Source: Penicillus capitatus
Lineage: Eukaryota > Plantae > Chlorophyta
Assembly (NCBI GenBank): GCA_965649825.1
Contig: OZ287695.1
Span: 1,413,188-1,477,187, forward strand
DNA: 64,000 bases
Direction of reading: 5' to 3'
Shown here: piece by piece, positions 54,042-64,000 of the stretch
Layout: each line of letters begins with the position of its first letter
How positions within the stretch are numbered: the stretch's first letter is position 1
Notes under the pieces: generated by a model
What the model was told of the DNA's origin: nothing
Databases searched by the model: none
The model's input: the letters and a program-made list of their open reading frames with translations, nothing else
Program-made: the position numbers and the translations under genes

Positions 54042-57000
54042 ATGGCGTCGTCTCTGCATCGCTCCCGCCGTCTTTGGACTCTCCTTCCTCAGTATTTGCG
54101 TTATGGAACGTCACTCCAGCACCTCTCTTTCTCGACGTCGGCTCATGTTTTGGCGCCCGACCCGCCAACACCGGAGCCCGTTCCAATGCGGAAGCTTAAG
54201 GACAGTTTTCTTTACGGCACCAGCAGTGCGTACTTAGAAGAACTGGAGAAACGTTACCAGGAAGATCCTCACAGCGTCGACAAAACGTGGGCGTCTTTCT
54301 TTCAGTCGCTCGAACAGGGCGTCAAACCCGAAGCCGTAGCAGAAGCGTATCACGCATTTGAGCGCGGAGAAACGTTGGAGCCTCTTCGATCTGCTTCTCT
54401 CACAGCGCAAACGGTGCCAGAGAGTCTCAAACTTATGACACTCATTCGAGCCTATCAGGTTTGTGCATGTCTCTCGAGGTCATCCAGGAAGTAAGGACGA
54501 CTGACAGGTCTATGGTCATTTCAAAGCGGATCTCGATCCTCTAAAAATGGAAACGAGAAAACAACTGCCATACCTGGAGCCAGCCTATTACGGATTCAAA
54601 CCGGAGGATTACGAACGCGAGTTTGCATTGGGGACGATCGGATTGGAAGGATTTCTTGGTGTCTCTTCACCTGTTGTCAAACTCAAGGACATCATTTCGC
54701 GCCTCGGTGAAGTCTACTGTGGAAACATCGGATATGAATACATGCACATACCAAACAGAGAGAAATGCAACTGGATTCGTGAACGGCTTGAGCTCATCAG
54801 TGACGTAGACACGCTTGGCTGGAGGCTGTGTGCATGAACTGTGCTGTTTCAGGTGGAATTAACGAAAGAGAGGAGAATACACATTTTGGATCGATTGGCG
54901 TGGAGTGAACTGTTCGAGGAATTTTTGGCAACAAAGTTTTCAGCGGCCAAGAGATTCGGCCTGGAAGGATGTTCGGTGGCTGTTCCCGGAATGAAAGCTG
55001 CGATCGACAAAGCAGCAGAACTTGGCGTCGAATCTGTCGTCATCGGAACAGCCCATCGAGGTCAAATCCACCAAGCACTCAGCTATACGCATTGCATGGT
55101 GCCTACTATATTAGGTCGATTGAATCTCTTGGCCAATGTGGTGCGGAAGCCACTGCGAACGATTTTTGGAGAATTTTCTGGCACAGGACCAGATGGCAAG
55201 TTCGAAGATCTGGACTCAGGAGACGTGCCTTACCATCAAGGAACGAGTTACGATCGACCAAGTCTGTCAGGCTCCATGCTGCACTTGTCTCTATTAGCCA
55301 ATCCAAGTCATCTCGAAGCAGTCGATCCGGTCGTCCTGGGCAAAACGCGTGCAAAGCAGCATCACGACAGAGATTTTGATCGCACGAAGAACATGCCGAT
55401 TTTGCTTCATGGTGACGGAAGCTTCTCTGGACAGGGGCTCGTTTACGAAACCTTTCATATGAGCGAATTGCCAGACTACACCGTCGGTGGAACGGTGCAC
55501 ATCGTTATCAATAATCAAGTGCATTCTTTGGCCGGACAAAAACGGAAAAGAGATGTATGAATGTTTGTGGTGGTGCAGTTGGCTTTCACAACAGATCCAG
55601 GAAAGGGGAGAAGTTCGACCTACTGCACAGATGTGGCCAAAGCCACGAACGCACCAGTCTTCCATGTCAACGGAGACAACGTCGAAGCAGTGGTGAAGGT
55701 GTGATGACCGCGACAGGGGCCTATGTTTGAGGGCAGTGATGTGACTAGGTCTGTGAATTGGCGGCGGAATGGAGACAGAAGTGGAAGTCAGATGTCGTCA
55801 TTGACATCGTCTGCTTCAGAAAGCATGGGCACAATGAGATCGATGAGCCCATGTTCACACACCCTCTGCTGTACAAGGTCGTCAAGAAGAAGAAGAACGC
55901 CTTGACACTATACCAGAACCAGCTCATGTCTGAAGGCATCATCGACCAGGTGCACGATAGAAGCTTCTACCGGAATGGGATTCAAGCACACCATATCCAT
56001 AGGAACATTGCGATGCCATGAGATCGCGAATCTTTTCCGAAATGTCAAACAAGTTGGAGGAGTCGAAGGATTACAAGCATCAGCCGCAGGAATGGCTGTC
56101 CAGTCACTGGAGAGGATTCAAGTCTCCTGAGCAAATGGCCCGTATCCGTTCAACAGGTGCCGTAGGAAGAGTTGGCAAACAGCCGCCCTCTCACAGACGC
56201 TTTCTCCTACAGGTGTCAAGATCGATATTTTAAGACAAGTTGGAACACAGATCACGACGATTGATCCGTCCATCACTCCTCATCGGCTAATCAAGAAAGT
56301 CTACCAACAACGGAATGAGATGATCACGAAGGGTCCGCCTCATCCTGCCTGGTCATTCGGGACTGTGTCTCTGTAGCGGACATGATGGGCGAGCTTGACT
56401 GGGGAATGGCAGAAGCTTTGGCTTTTGCTACTCTGCTCAGCGAGGGCAACCATGTCCGACTGAGTGGGCAAGATGTCGAGCGCGGAACTTTTAGTCACAG
56501 GCATGCTGTCATCCATGACCAGAACACGGCAGCGACATACACACCATTGAAGCATGTCTGTCGGGAGCAACACCCAGACCATTTCATCGTGGGCAACAGT
56601 CCATTGGCAGAGTACAGCGTTTTGGGTTTCGAGATGGGATACTCTCTGGAGAATCCTAACGCACTGGTGTTGTGGGAAGCACAATTTGGCGACTTTGCCA
56701 ACGGAGCTCAGGTCCGTCTGCTCTTCGGAGGCGCTCATCTGTCTACGCTCTGATGTTTACAGGTGATGATCGATCAGTTCTTAGTGGCGGGAGAGGCCAA
56801 ATGGAATCGTCAGTCTGGTCTTGTGCTGCTTCTACCTCATGGATACGATGGCCAAGGCCCCGAGCACAGCAGTGCCAGAATGGAGCGATTTCTGCAGATG
56901 ATCAACGAGGATGCCGATCGCGTACCGGAGATCGAGGAATCGAAATGGTTATCCGGAGCACATCTGGGCGTCCAGATTCAGAGCTCCAATTTCCAGATCG

Positions 57001-57735
57001 TCAATTGCACAACACCGGCAAACTACTTCCACGTTCTACGTCGTCAGGTTGCCGATCCCCCTCTCACGAGTGGCATTTACACTAGCAGTCGGTGTTTAGA
57101 TCCACCGTGAATTTCGGAAGCCGTTGGTTGTCTTTGCTCCCAAGAACCTTTTGCGGCATCCTGCATGCAAGTCGTATCTGTGGGAATTCGATGACATCCC
57201 AGATGACGAGGGCGTCCGAGGCGTGCGTTTCAAGAGGTTGATCATGGATGACAAGGGAATCCTTCCCAAACTGCGTGGACCTAATCCACCTGCCGAACCA
57301 GAGTTCAAGAGGGTTATCTTCTGCAGCGGCAAAGTCTTCTTTGACCTTCATGCCAGACGCGAAGAACTCAAGAGGGATGACATTGCCCTTGTCCGCATCG
57401 AACAAGTGCATCGTTTCTGCATCTCCTTATGGTATACTGACGATCTTTTTCCTTGTCAGCTGGCGCCGTTTCCTTTTGATTTGGTCTGTCGTGAACTTCG
57501 CCGATACCCCAATGCCGAGATTCTTTGGTGTCAGGAAGAGCCGGCAAACATGGGAGCCTATCGTCACTTCGAGCCGCGGATGTTCGCATGTCTGCGGAAT
57601 GAAGGGCGCGAAGTAACACCGCCGCTTAAGTATGCCGGGAGACGTGTGGCCTCCAGCCCTGCAACTGGCTTCAAGAAAGTGCACGTGCAGCAGCAGACCG
57701 AACTTGTCGACAAGGCGTTAGATCTAGACTTCTAG
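54042..57735 (+). CDS. OGDH: 2-oxoglutarate dehydrogenase E1, mitochondrial, multi-exon
   Basis: Motifs [65 protein letters not shown] and [23 protein letters not shown]. Confidence 0.98.
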
Positions 57736-59714
57736 CCTCCTGAGCATGTGTTGGTAATTGAATTGCAGAAACAGCATCTATGTATTCGTTGGATCGTCAT
57801 GCACAATGGTGTATTGAAGATGACCTCTGAACCAATGATTTGCTGTTCTCTCGAGTGAGAGCTGATTGCAGTTGTCAGTTTTATTTCTCCAAAGTCATGT
57901 CTCGAAGCCTCTCGAGATCTCTTACGGCCATGCTTACTCGTGCCACGCAAGTTTGTTCCTTTCCATGTTGAGGAGAACCTAGCGCCTCAATTCCCTTTGC
58001 TTATTTGCTGATGTCCTTCAATCAAACTATTGAATGGATTACGAATGAGTGAAAGAACTCTAACTATAAAGGTGTCAATGCGGTTGTCGTTCTCTTCTAT
58101 ATGTATCTCCAAAGACTTTACTTGCGTTATGCACGACATCCGTGTTCTCGAGCATCTGTCTCGTGGTGCACTTAGTCCGTAAGAAAGAGTGTCTTACCGT
58201 CTGCTGGAATCACGTTAAATTGAATCTGTGGAAAATGCTGTCAGCAAATAGCAACTGTCAACCAAGTCCAAGAGAGGTTTTGGGTAATGTCGAGATAAAG
58301 AGAGAGTGTTACCCACACAGGTAAGCAGTTCGAACAGGCGTTGTCACTCAACATCCAAGCAAACACCCTCGACGTGCGCGTTCACGATCAACTGTCATTG
58401 TTCTTCCGGCGAGTCGCGATCGGTCCATGTGATTGTGGTCAGTTTAATTGGTCCGTTCTCTGGGGGACAAGCTGATGTCTGTATTTCTGCTGCAAAGGAA
58501 CGGATTGGCAGACTGATGGATGATATCCAGCAGATCGATCGTATGACCGTTTTGAGACAACAATCATTTTAACAAACGATGCTAGGAGAGACAGATGATC
58601 ATCATCTTGTCCGTACGATGTTCTGAGAGCACTCGGATGATGTATTCTATGTTGCCCGGTCTCCATGACCGCCACCGTGAAGTCGTTCCTGGGCCCAGCG
58701 CTGAGAACTCTTAAAGAATTTTGGCGATCTCAGCCCACTGCTGGAAGAGGACACTGGCATCAACATCGAAAGACTGCGTGAACAGACGTGTATTCCAAAC
58801 AACACGTAGGGTTACACCAATCAGTGCCCCGAAATGCATCTCTCCAGATCCATGTCTGCATGCAGAGCAACTCGTCCATTTCTCCCTGCTGCTGCGATCA
58901 TACTTACTGGCTTGACCTGCTTCGTCACGTAGACATCGATCAAAGCACAGATCGCTCCCCGAGTCGTTGCAGCACCACAGCGAGATCCAGATCTTGCGGC
59001 ACTCTGTCTTACAGTCGCCGCCGCTTCTCATGCTGTCTTGGGCCAAAGCAAGTCGTCGACGGCTTCGCAGAAGGAGCAGCATTTCTCGCACAGCCGATGC
59101 AAAACGCGATTGGCTTTCACTGGCCAAAGCGGTCGAGGACTGCCGTAGCACTCGATGCCGCGAGCGAACTTGAACTGAAACTATGGTTCCGGGGCCGTCT
59201 GGTCGTCGCAGAAGATCGACCGTTCCGTTCCGCCTTCCATGTTCGAGAGAGTTAGCGCCATGGACAACTCCTGGAACCGATTTGCGTTACACCGCGCAGA
59301 TCGCCCTGTCGACGGCGTTTGCGACGGAAACGCCCGAAACAGACGGCCGTCCAGACGCACAGTCCGTTCCGCTCCTGCGAAAGAGAACGCCCGCCGCGTT
59401 CCTCTGCCCAGGCAACGCGGAGCTGGCTCGAGCGGTTGGCCGTTCGGAGAATCGCGTCGAAACAGCCGCAGAGAACGCATGCGCGTTACACTCAGAGCGG
59501 AACATGCCGACAAACTGTAAGGAATCTCTTCTGTAAAACACTTAGAAAAGCTTCCAGAAGTGCTCTCCCTTTCGCGACGCGCATCCCGACGACAGTACTC
59601 TGCGCTTCTAGAGGTCTGGCGGCCGATCGTTTGTCCGGCGGCGCATGCAGCGCCGCCAAACGGTCACGGTTCCCAGCCGCCACCCGCAGGCCGCGCTCGG
59701 CAACCGAGGCGGCC

Positions 59715-59720
59715 TATAAA
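59715..59720 (+). promoter_or_regulatory. TATA-box-like element upstream of the orphan Pro-rich gene
   Basis: TATAAA in a GC-rich context, 86 nt upstream of ATG 59806. Confidence 0.4.
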
Positions 59721-59805
59721 GGTCGCGTCGCAGACCCTTCCGCACTGTCGAGTTGTTTGAACTCCCGCCTTCCTGTTTTCCAGAGCTCAAGCGAAGAAGA
59801 AGACA

Positions 59806-61030
59806 ATGGCTGACGAACGCATGTTCACAGAAGAGGACTACGGATATCCTGACAGACCGTGAGTCCACTGGCCATTCGTCGAAACGTCGCGCGCTGCAGA
59901 GCCTTTCGACTGCGGCTGGACACTCTCCACGAACACGCATGCGTCCGGCTGCAGTCGAGAAGCTCTGCAGCGCGCGACGTTTCGACGAACTCTTCTTCGA
60001 CTGATCTCTAACCATTGTGTGTTCCCAGTTTTGCCCAGGTTACGTTGAGGGAGGTCCTGGGAAGTCACCCGCCCAGGGCCTTCGTGAGATTGGACGAGGC
60101 CGCGCGCAGGGAGTTGTATTGGGATTTAAAATCCCGAACAACTGCCCAGAGGGGTCAAGCGCACATCGATGCGCAGACCCCTCCTGTGCGGTTTGGACCC
60201 AATAGGGTCCAAACCCCACAGCCGCGGCCTGTGCGACGGGCGAGGGTCCTGTCCTCTGAGGACAGGAGAGCGCGGCTGGCCCAACAGGGCCAGCCTGCTG
60301 CTCCGCCGCCACCTGCGCGCCCTGCATCGCCACCTGCCCAGCACCCAGCTGCATCACATGTCTTGCAGCGCGCTCCTCCGCCGGCCTCCCAGCACAGAGC
60401 TCCTCCGCCACAGCAGCCAGCAGCGCCGCCGCCGACCTCGCAGCCGGCAGCTCCTCCTCCACAGCACCCAGCAGTGCAGCCGCCGACCACACAGCCGGCC
60501 GCTCCTCCTGCCTGGCAGCCTGGCCAGCCGCCCGTCATGGAGTGGTCGCCTGCTTCCCCAGTCACGCCGCCTTTCCAGCCTCCAGCCGCCAATCCTGTCG
60601 AGTCTCCTGACACGGAGTGGGTCCCGGTTCCCTGTGCGCAGCCCGTTTTCTCCCTGTCCTCTGTGCAGCATGACCGAGCTCCTCTGTTCCCTCCAAGGCC
60701 GGCTGTGTTCTGCATTCCTGCCTCACCTGCCCCCATAATTCCATCTCGCCCGTGCTTTTTCTCCCTCCCGGCTTGTCCATCTCCCTTCCCTCAGCGGACA
60801 TCAGTTTTTCTCCCTCCGGCAACCGCCCCCCATCCCTCCCCGCAACTCAATTTTTCCGGTCAGACGACCTGGATTCCCTCCCCGTCCGTTTTTCATGTCG
60901 GGCCAGTGCATCACCATCTGCCCCCCAGCCATCCCGCAACGACTGTTCTTCATGTCAGGACAGTGTGTAAGCAAGCCACTCTCTTCTTTAGTCTCTCTCA
61001 TGCTCTGTTTGTTCTGCAGGTTACTATTGA
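59806..61030 (+). CDS. Orphan Pro/Gln-rich protein, three exons (possibly element-borne)
   Basis: Exon 1 MADERMFTEEDYGYPDR ends at a GTGAGT donor (59859). A CTAAC branch point (60008-60012) and AG (60027-28) join it in frame to the long ORF. A second intron, GTAAGC..TGCAG at 60967-61019, precedes a TGA stop at 61028-30. Confidence 0.55.
59875..59989 (+). repeat. Near-perfect inverted repeat (47-bp stem, 21-nt loop) inside an intron
   Basis: TTCGTCGAAACGTCGCGCGCTGCAGAGC pairs exactly with GCTCTGCAGCGCGCGACGTTTCGACGAA (28 bp). The inner 19 bp has 3 G-U pairs and 1 C-A mismatch on the plus strand. Confidence 0.95.
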
Positions 61031-61279
61031 AAATTAGCATGAATTAGGGGCCGATCTCTGGAGTTTTTTGTGCAAGCTGTTTCTCGGGGGTAACAAAAAT
61101 ACATAAAAGAACAAATATTTTTCTCCTCTGTCTATAATCTCACACCTTTTTAAGTGTGAGAAAAAATAAAAATAAAAAAAAGATTAACAGGGGCTGTTTT
61201 TCTTTCTTGTGGAGTCTCACTGCCATTCCACCTCCGCTTTGTTGTGGATGGCCTTGTGGTAGCTGTTGTTTACTTGGAA

Positions 61280-62185: not shown

Positions 62186-64000
62186 GAGACGGCAATGGCG
62201 GCCAACTGACATCTGGCCGCCGCTGGAGGCCGACCCTCACGCTCTGGCTGCCAGTGGAGGCAGCCAGAGCACTCTACCTACCTGCTCTGGCCGCCGCCGC
62301 CGAAGACAAAGACAGGCGTCCAACCTGACGTCTGGCCGCCGCTGGAGGCCGGCCCTCACGCTCTGGCTGCCAGTGGAGGCAGCCAGAGCACTCTACCTAC
62401 CTGCTCTGGCCGCCGCCGAAGACAAAGACAGGCGTCCAACCTGACGTCTGGCCGCCCATGGAGGCCGGCCCTCACGCTCTGGCTGCCAGTGGAGGCGGCA
62501 ATGGCGGCCAACTGACATCTGGCCGCCGCTGGAGGCCGGCCCTCACGCCCTGGCTGCCAGTGGAGGCAGCCAGAGCACTCTACCTACCTGCTCTGGCCGC
62601 GAGTGGAGGCGGCAATGGCGGCCCACAGTCATCTGGCCGCCGCTGGAGGCCGGCCCTCACGCTCTGGCTGCCAGTGGAGGCAGCCAGAGCACTCTACCTA
62701 CCTGCTCTGGCCCGCGAGTGGAGGCGGCAATGGCGGCCCACAGTCATCTGGCCGCCGCTGGAGGCCGGCCCTCACGCTCTGGCTGCCAGTGGAGGCAGCC
62801 AGAGCACTCTACCTACCTGCTCTGGCCGCCGCCGCCGAAGACAAAGGACAGGCGTCCAACCTGACGTCTGGCCGCCGCTGGAGGCCGGCCCTCACGCTCT
62901 GGCTGCCAGTGGAGGCAGCCAGAGCACTCTACCTACCTGCTCTGGCCGCGAGTGGAGGCGGCAATGGCGGCCCACAGTCATCTGGCCGCCGCTGGAGGCC
63001 GGCCCTCACGCTCTGGCTTGCCAGTGGAGGCCGGCAATGGCGGCCAACTGACATCTGGCCGCCGCTGGAGGCCGGCCCTTACGCTCTGGCTGCCAGTGGA
63101 GGCAGCCAGAGCACTCTACCTACCTGCTCTGGCCGCGAGTGGAGGCGGCAATGGCGGCCCACAGTCATCTGGCCGCCGCTGGAGGCCGGCCCTCACGCTC
63201 TGGCTGCCAGTGGAGGCAGCCAGAGCACTCTACCTACCTGATACTCTGCCCGCCAGTGGAGGCGGCAATGGCGGCCCACAGTCATCTGGCCGCCGCTGGA
63301 GGCCGGCCCTCACGCTCTGGCTGCCAGTGGAGGCGGCAATGGCGGCCCACAGTCATCTGGCCGCCGCTGGAGGCCGGCCCTCACGCTCTGGCTGCCAGTG
63401 GAGGCAGCCAGAGCACTCTACCTACCTGATACTCTGCCCGCCAGTGGAGGCGGCAATGGCGGCCCACAGTCATCTGGCCGCCGCTGGAGGCCGGCCCTCA
63501 CGCTCTGGCTGCCAGTGGAGGCAGCCAGAGCACTCTACCTACCTGCTCTGGCCGCGAGTGGAGGCGGCAATGGCGGCCCACAGTCATCTGGCCGCCGCTG
63601 GAGGCCGGCCCTCACGCTCTGGCTGCCGCTGGAGGCCGGCCCTCACGCTCTGGCTGCCAGTGGAGGCAGCCAGAGCACTCTACCTACCTGCTCTGGCCGC
63701 GAGTGGAGGCGGCAATGGCGGCCCACAGTCATCTGGCCGCCGCTGGAGGCCGGCCCTCACGCTCTGGCTGCCAGTGGAGGCAGCCAGAGCACTCTACCTA
63801 CCTGCTCTGGCCGCCGCCGCCGAAGACAAAGACAGGCGTCCAACCTGGCGTCTTTCCGCCGCCGGAGATACAGACAGGCGGTCACAGGCGTCCAGCCCAA
63901 CGCTCTGGCTGCCAGTGGAGGCTGTCAGGGCACCTTACCTGATGCTCTGGCCGCTAGTGGAGGCGGCCATGGCGGCTTACCTGATGCTTGGCTGTCGGTG
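62185..64000. repeat. Tandem array 4: modular GC-rich satellite with a ~114-bp higher-order unit, degenerating at the window end
   Basis: Shuffled 40-, 31- and 43-bp modules, each starting GGAGGC, plus an occasional GAAGACAAAGACAGGCGTCCAACCTGACGTCT module. Confidence 0.95.

Follow-up and report, generated by a model that had tools for sequence, protein, structure and literature searches.

A hairpin with a 47-bp stem occupies most of the first intron of a proline-rich gene in the 64-kb window (the whole stretch of DNA analysed). We tentatively favour, at a probability of about 45% and from the geometry, a reading in which this is a structured, oversized first intron, whose stem would be renewed by copying of one arm from the other and would loop out the extra DNA so that the intron stays spliceable. 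The proposed history begins with an old, short stem-loop carrying a conserved GCATGC word in its loop, which would later have been lengthened and repeatedly perfected, with one arm serving from time to time as the template for the other in DNA synthesis, via template switching at the quasi-palindrome. On transcription the 47-bp stem would form and loop out 115 of the 170 nt, and the spliceosome would then meet 16 + 39 = 55 nt with a donor-to-branch distance of 37 nt, approximately an ordinary intron of 51-54 nt. We propose that a splicing system geared to tiny introns stays undisturbed by an insert only if the insert pairs with itself, and that this is why the extra DNA has been tolerated and the stem maintained. 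The locus is laid out as follows, with paralogues given by P numbers:

59650-59730, + strand: promoter block, TATAAA at 59716-59721; nearly identical minus-frame peptide DLYRPPRLPSAACGWRLGTV in P0021, P0022 and P0023
59806-59858, + strand: exon 1, 53 nt (ATG, 17 codons and 2 nt), in frame with exon 2 once 170 nt are removed
59859-60028, + strand: intron 1, 170 nt, GTGAGT ... CTAAC ... CAG
59859-59874, + strand: 5' linker from donor to stem, 16 nt
59875-59921, + strand: hairpin 5' arm, 47 nt
59922-59942, + strand: hairpin loop, 21 nt, containing the palindromic word ACGCATGCGT
59935-59944, + strand: ACGCATGCGT, extending 2 nt into the 3' arm
59943-59989, + strand: hairpin 3' arm, 47 nt
59990-60028, + strand: 3' linker, 39 nt; CTAAC at 60008-60012, branch A at 60011, 17 nt before the acceptor
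60029-60966, + strand: exon 2, with conserved N-domain, Pro/Gln-rich middle and PxxPxR-type C-domain (family alignment A1)
60109-60295, + strand: row of 5-6 separate short hairpins in exon 2
60826-60831, + strand: C6 run, at which the reading frame of this copy departs by 1 nt from that of the family
60967-61019, + strand: intron 2, 53 nt, GTAAGC..TGCAG, normal size
61020-61037, + strand: exon 3, five codons and stop

Intron 1 is predicted to be a spliceosomal intron, and its boundaries, the restored reading frame and the conservation of these boundaries in homologues support the prediction. The textbook signals described in the initial annotation are all in place, with GTGAGT at 59859, CTAAC at 60008 and CAG at 60026-60028, and removal of the intron joins the 53 nt from the ATG at 59806 in frame, at 60029, to the ORF 60015-61037. 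Four hand-checked local introns served as the size reference: 56712-56762 (51 nt), 57048-57099 (52 nt), 57406-57459 (54 nt) and 60967-61019 (53 nt). The first three lie in the neighbouring 2-oxoglutarate dehydrogenase gene, in which the expected Pfam domains are present, and the fourth is intron 2 of the hairpin gene itself. Measured against these 51-54 nt, the 170 nt of intron 1 amount to about 3.2 times the norm, in agreement with the earlier estimate of roughly three times. A scan for GTRAGY..CTRAY..YAG finds few sites in the window, and since local donors are loose and textbook signals scarce, the signals of intron 1 are stronger than the local norm. The 2-oxoglutarate dehydrogenase introns (56712-57459) have the weak donors GTCCGT, GTTGCC and GTGCAT, and consensus GTRAGY donors are found in both intron 1, with the hairpin, and intron 2 of the proline-rich gene.

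The exon boundaries recur across the family. In all paralogues (about 29), protein conservation sets in abruptly at the acceptor, immediately ahead of F[AS]QVTL, and upstream of this motif the called ORFs continue as unrelated sequence ending in C-V-x-C-x. This ending corresponds to an acceptor pyrimidine tract followed by CAG, so that the intron-exon boundary is a family feature. The donor in P0017-P0020 reads GTGAGT or GTAAGT by parsimony (VDSR versus DLR in the minus frame), and paralogue ORFs read through the intron-2 donor at the matching point, GQCVS (codons TGT GTR AGY).

From this family, the host gene is a multi-copy, lineage-specific, proline-rich gene, and not the orphan that the initial annotation took it to be. 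Protein searches used exon 2 alone, the 17 codons of exon 1 being too short as a query, and they returned 12 relatives with the whole exon-2 ORF, 16 with the first 96 residues and 24 in an exhaustive search of cluster representatives. In total the family has at least 29 unnamed members, all from ENA assemblies and spread over many contigs of up to 2.2 Mb; the family protein patterns have no match in JGI metagenome contigs, and the exon-2 ORF has none in Pfam. The shared layout is an N-domain starting with F[AS]QVTL, a Pro/Gln-rich middle and a PxxPxR-type C-domain (alignment A1). Exon 1 is conserved in P0017-P0020, where the inferred changes, counted by hand, fall mostly at third codon positions of the + strand (5) rather than second (1). 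P0021, P0022 and P0023 share contigs with the paralogues P0012, P0009 and P0005/P0010, respectively. The TATAAA promoter block is almost unchanged at these distant loci (P0021-P0023) and far better kept than exon 1. The earlier suggestion of a repeat-associated locus silencing itself fits poorly with a multi-member family whose TATA promoter block, donor and acceptor are conserved. After the C6 run, the frame from 60832 is 84% identical to residues 230-274 of P0005, and the one-base shift at 60826-60831 would either mark this copy as a pseudogene or be a homopolymer error of the assembly.

The hairpin itself is as first described, with a 47-bp stem and a 21-nt loop at 59875-59989; both the inverted-repeat coordinates and fold z-scores of about -10 bear this out. 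The arms are complementary at 43/47 positions (91%) across their 21-nt separation, and with satellites excluded this is by far the strongest short-range inverted repeat in the 64-kb window. As + strand RNA, the 170-nt intron (59859-60028) folds at -99.2 kcal/mol against -54.4 +/- 4.2 in dinucleotide shuffles (z -10.6), and the - strand folds at -101.3 kcal/mol (z -9.9). Taken alone, the stem-loop is slightly more stable on the sense strand (-94.2 versus -91.1 kcal/mol antisense), and as single-stranded DNA it reaches -57.5 (z -11.1). On the + strand the imperfections are 59903.59961 C.A, 59905.59959 U.G, 59914.59950 G.U and 59917.59947 U.G. The three G-U wobbles out of four that had been reported thus hold position by position, leaving one mismatch, and all four imperfections are transitions.

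Subtraction of the 115-nt stem-loop leaves an intron of normal size, as a clean insertion would. A foldback or MITE-type transposon inserted into a normal 55-nt intron would account for this, and the hairpin resembles such elements in being a short structure, nearly all inverted repeat, in non-coding DNA. It differs from them in that no target-site duplication or dispersed copies accompany it and it is inherited with its host gene. The arms are flanked by ...CTGGCCA and CTCTTCT..., which have no direct repeat in common, in line with the earlier statement that no target-site duplication is present; no second copy of the hairpin repeat lies elsewhere in the 64-kb window, and the arm core has no exact copy in JGI metagenome contigs. 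Moreover, every relative found sits in the same intron of the same family, with exon 1 and promoter homology, and the hairpin has therefore spread with the gene and not by itself. A MITE origin is barely credible, and we rejected it for want of a target-site duplication and of copies independent of the host gene.

The case for the favoured reading, in which the stem masks the extra length, comes from the position of the stem relative to the splicing signals. Between the donor and the stem there are 16 nt, and between the stem and the A of CTAAC (60011) a further 21 nt, so that intron 1 minus the 115-nt stem-loop leaves 16 + 39 = 55 nt and a donor-to-branch path of 37 nt; the corresponding distance in the ordinary intron 57406-57459 is roughly 34 nt. 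In yeast, stems that zip up long introns follow positional rules of at least 10 nt and at least 20 nt (PMC12350175), and the 16 nt on the donor side and 21 nt on the branch side observed here lie within both. The total linker window in yeast is 42-85 nt, and not every zipper stem promoted splicing there (PMC12350175). Both points count against our reading, as the 37-nt linker of intron 1 falls below that range while lying close to the local donor-to-branch distance. The likeness to yeast zipper stems (PMC12350175) extends to the way in which the stem would shorten the effective distance across an intron of unusual length for the genome, and to a stem whose sequence is poorly conserved and whose pairing is recurrent. 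This last trait, pairing kept despite sequence change, is seen at the level of peptides in P0006 (P 0.0002, three double changes) and P0021 (p 0.027). The intron-1 stem, at 47 bp, greatly exceeds typical yeast stems in length and perfection, its host is a green alga with 50-nt introns, its linker is shorter than 42-85 nt, and its role in splicing is a putative one.

Relatives were compared at the peptide level, by degenerate back-translation of the peptides of intron read-through ORFs and with shuffled-peptide nulls. The minus-strand ORF 59611-60015 has seven relatives (alignment A2), and in this minus frame the amino acids fix two of every three stem positions. P0017 (96% identical), P0018, P0019 and P0020 are close relatives and P0021 is a distant one; P0022 and P0023 cover the promoter part only. 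The palindrome search gave the following:

Window (control): 47-nt arms, 1 incompatible position, p < 0.004
P0017: 47-nt arms, 2 incompatible positions, p < 0.004
P0018: 49-nt arms, 2 incompatible positions, p < 0.004
P0020: 47-nt arms, 0 incompatible positions, p < 0.004
P0021: 26-nt arms (the full extent of its ORF coverage), 1 incompatible position, p 0.027

All 8 of the 8 fully determined pairs in P0021 are complementary. P0006 was compared with the window in the plus frame, in which the two share the peptide HACVRLQSRS; at the window register, 11/16 of its codon pairs are perfectly complementable, against 4.5 in shuffles (P 0.0002) and 2-6 in slid registers. Comparison by hand of the window with P0006 finds three middle-base pairs in which both partners have changed (G-C to A-T, T-A to C-G and A-T to G-C), and one G.U pair common to both. 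These peptide comparisons place the hairpin at the same site in three close relatives and two more distant paralogues. The 3' linker, including the branch word, has no residue change in P0017, P0018 and P0020. A free palindrome search in the plus frame gave no significant hairpin in P0001, P0003, P0004, P0008, P0010, P0013 or P0026-P0031, at a power that is low because codon position 1 pairs with position 3, the window control itself reaching only z 4.7. The first introns of six of these paralogues (P0008, P0010, P0013, P0027, P0030 and P0031) are about 120-250 nt or longer, and that this weak plus-frame test detects no hairpin in them speaks, if lightly, against a stem that keeps long introns spliceable.

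The two parts of the stem differ in their history. Between the window and P0006, 13/18 residues of the outer stem differ, yet the outer 28 bp are perfect in the window, whereas 3/14 differ in the inner stem (P 0.011). All four imperfections of the window stem fall within its inner 19 positions (P = 0.022). We read this pattern as an old core, made up of the inner stem and the GCATGC loop, flanked by 28 outer bp that vary from paralogue to paralogue on both arms. Inverted-repeat arms are known to be made uniform and lengthened by template switching (PMC13100816, PMC3820800), which can also generate a hairpin in a single step and is documented as an origin of new miRNA hairpins (PMC10710096). 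Intron 1 resembles such template-switch hairpins and quasi-palindrome mutations (PMC3820800, PMC13100816, PMC10710096) in its perfect outer stem with older mismatches elsewhere, in 'compensatory' changes that appear on both arms at once, and in arms that differ between paralogues and match within a copy. The difference is that its product sits in a length-constrained, tiny-intron setting, and that the switching event is here a putative one, read from peptides. Since arm copying alone can produce paired changes, such changes are by themselves no proof of RNA selection, which weakens the favoured reading as well. The covariation raised earlier as a check is thus present in P0006, at the peptide level, and the compensatory selection on RNA that it might have indicated does not follow from it.

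A neutral DNA palindrome, kept and renewed purely by template switching during replication and with an RNA fold that has no bearing on splicing, would explain the perfect outer 28 bp that differ between paralogues on both arms, the old mismatches confined to the inner stem, and a fold whose quality is the same for either strand and for DNA. It would also sit well with the surroundings, as both exon 2 and the downstream satellites are rich in hairpins, which is expected of a regional mutational process. The exon-2 segment 60100-60300, in the conserved N-domain, has an MFE of -128.4 versus -78.6 +/- 4.9 kcal/mol in shuffles (z -10.1). When counted at the peptide level across 29 paralogues, the exon-2 hairpins covary no more than slid controls do, so these hairpins are possibly copy- or subfamily-specific, and together with the hairpin satellites downstream they suggest that the region or the gene family is prone to palindrome formation. 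A neighbouring exon filled with hairpins points to a local mutational habit rather than to a purpose-built intron device. The frame shift that may make this copy a pseudogene likewise favours neutrality and tells against a splicing role. We nevertheless consider the neutral palindrome somewhat unlikely. Paralogues that share no more than about 67-77% identity in their N-domains have the hairpin at one and the same intron position, with an unchanged register and loop size, the 55-nt remainder closely matches the local intron size, and the stems of close relatives change no more than the rest of the region (4/86 versus 18/142 residues; P 0.06, with sequences that are not independent).

A small-RNA precursor is the other possible use of the fold. 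Dicer-like cutting of the stem, in the excised intron or the pre-mRNA, would yield one or two 21-24-nt duplexes for loading into Argonaute. The long, near-perfect stem has the shape of a suitable substrate, its 47 bp and -94.2 kcal/mol lying well beyond the approximately 21 bp expected of a miRNA precursor, with transcription taken from the gene model. In Chlamydomonas reinhardtii, DCL3-dependent miRNAs and hairpin siRNAs are produced from introns, and many of its miRNAs arise in introns of coding genes (PMC4817775). Intron 1 is like these DCL3-dependent precursors (PMC4817775) in that a protein-coding gene of a green alga has a long, near-perfect hairpin in one of its introns, and unlike them in belonging to a different green-alga lineage and in having no visibly conserved mature sequence. 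The documented origin of new miRNA hairpins by template switching (PMC10710096) also fits, as do the slightly greater stability of the + strand hairpin and its three wobbles to one. However, no Rfam family scores above chance, the best being mir-4888 at 23.7 bits against a gathering score of 90 (E 0.82). The initial annotation had looked to targets complementary to the arms; elsewhere in the 64-kb window, every site that resembles a 21-mer of the hairpin has at least 4 mismatches to it, and matches with up to 5 mismatches are few and shuffle-like (39 versus 15.8 +/- 8.5, within the window). Its caution that a 3:1 wobble ratio is statistically weak was justified, as the bias is still non-significant when relatives are added (4:1, one-sided P 0.19). 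Furthermore, paralogues have the pairing and the loop in common but not the sequence of the arms, so that no mature sequence is under visible constraint. We therefore consider a small-RNA precursor unlikely, and a microRNA or siRNA role of the intron-1 hairpin is possible but unsupported. As to the earlier proposal of a small-RNA-producing or splicing-regulating module, the geometry and the 55-nt remainder speak for its splicing half, and its small-RNA half finds no backing in Rfam or in targets within the window.

The loop invites a further reading, in which the stem is a scaffold presenting the conserved GCATGC loop to a sequence-specific protein, either an RNA-binding pre-mRNA factor or a dimeric DNA-binding factor. 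Between distant copies the loop is better kept than the arms: its peptide reads RMHVHGE in P0021 versus RMRVRGE in the window, and HACV is retained in P0002, P0006, P0008 and P0010. The loop peptide RM[RH]V[RH]GE is likewise present in P0017, P0018 and P0019. Words compatible with GCATGCG recur in the first-intron read-through ORFs of five paralogues (P0013, P0027, P0028, P0030 and P0031). In addition, CGCATGCG occurs in the 64 kb only at 59476 and 59936, that is, 330 nt upstream of the ATG and in the hairpin loop, so that both sites adjoin the hairpin gene. Set against this, GCATGC itself is not enriched in the window (17 versus 25 expected), loop changes are more frequent than arm changes among close relatives (5/24 versus 4/86 residues), the motif is deduced from peptides and the binding factor is hypothetical. 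We regard such a scaffold as very unlikely. A third GCATGC near the hairpin gene lies at 59643. The downstream satellite at 62241-63790 consists of hairpin units with 12-bp stems and an AGTGGA loop, and GTGGAG is also found in the loop of the intron hairpin, on the minus strand.

For the discovery of RNAs by covariation, the locus carries a caution, namely that paired changes in a hairpin can stem from the recopying of an arm and not from selection on RNA. New microRNAs are also proposed to originate from hairpins of this type. It is conceivable, although distinctly improbable, that template switching is a continuing source of long, perfect stems in first introns across this expanding family, and shorter ones in its first coding exon, with the intronic stems doubling as splicing aid and Dicer substrates. 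In that case, each paralogue would have its own young, copy-specific small-RNA gene, and the family would form a natural series of miRNA-like gene birth in a length-constrained intron. For the favoured splicing reading, the wider interest lies in intron size. Where all introns of a genome are tiny, splicing is thought to proceed by strict intron definition, and an intron of three times the usual length is then a natural experiment. Should the stem be the reason why this intron is accepted, the many paralogues with different stems would provide material for testing RNA structure as a substitute for length control outside yeast.
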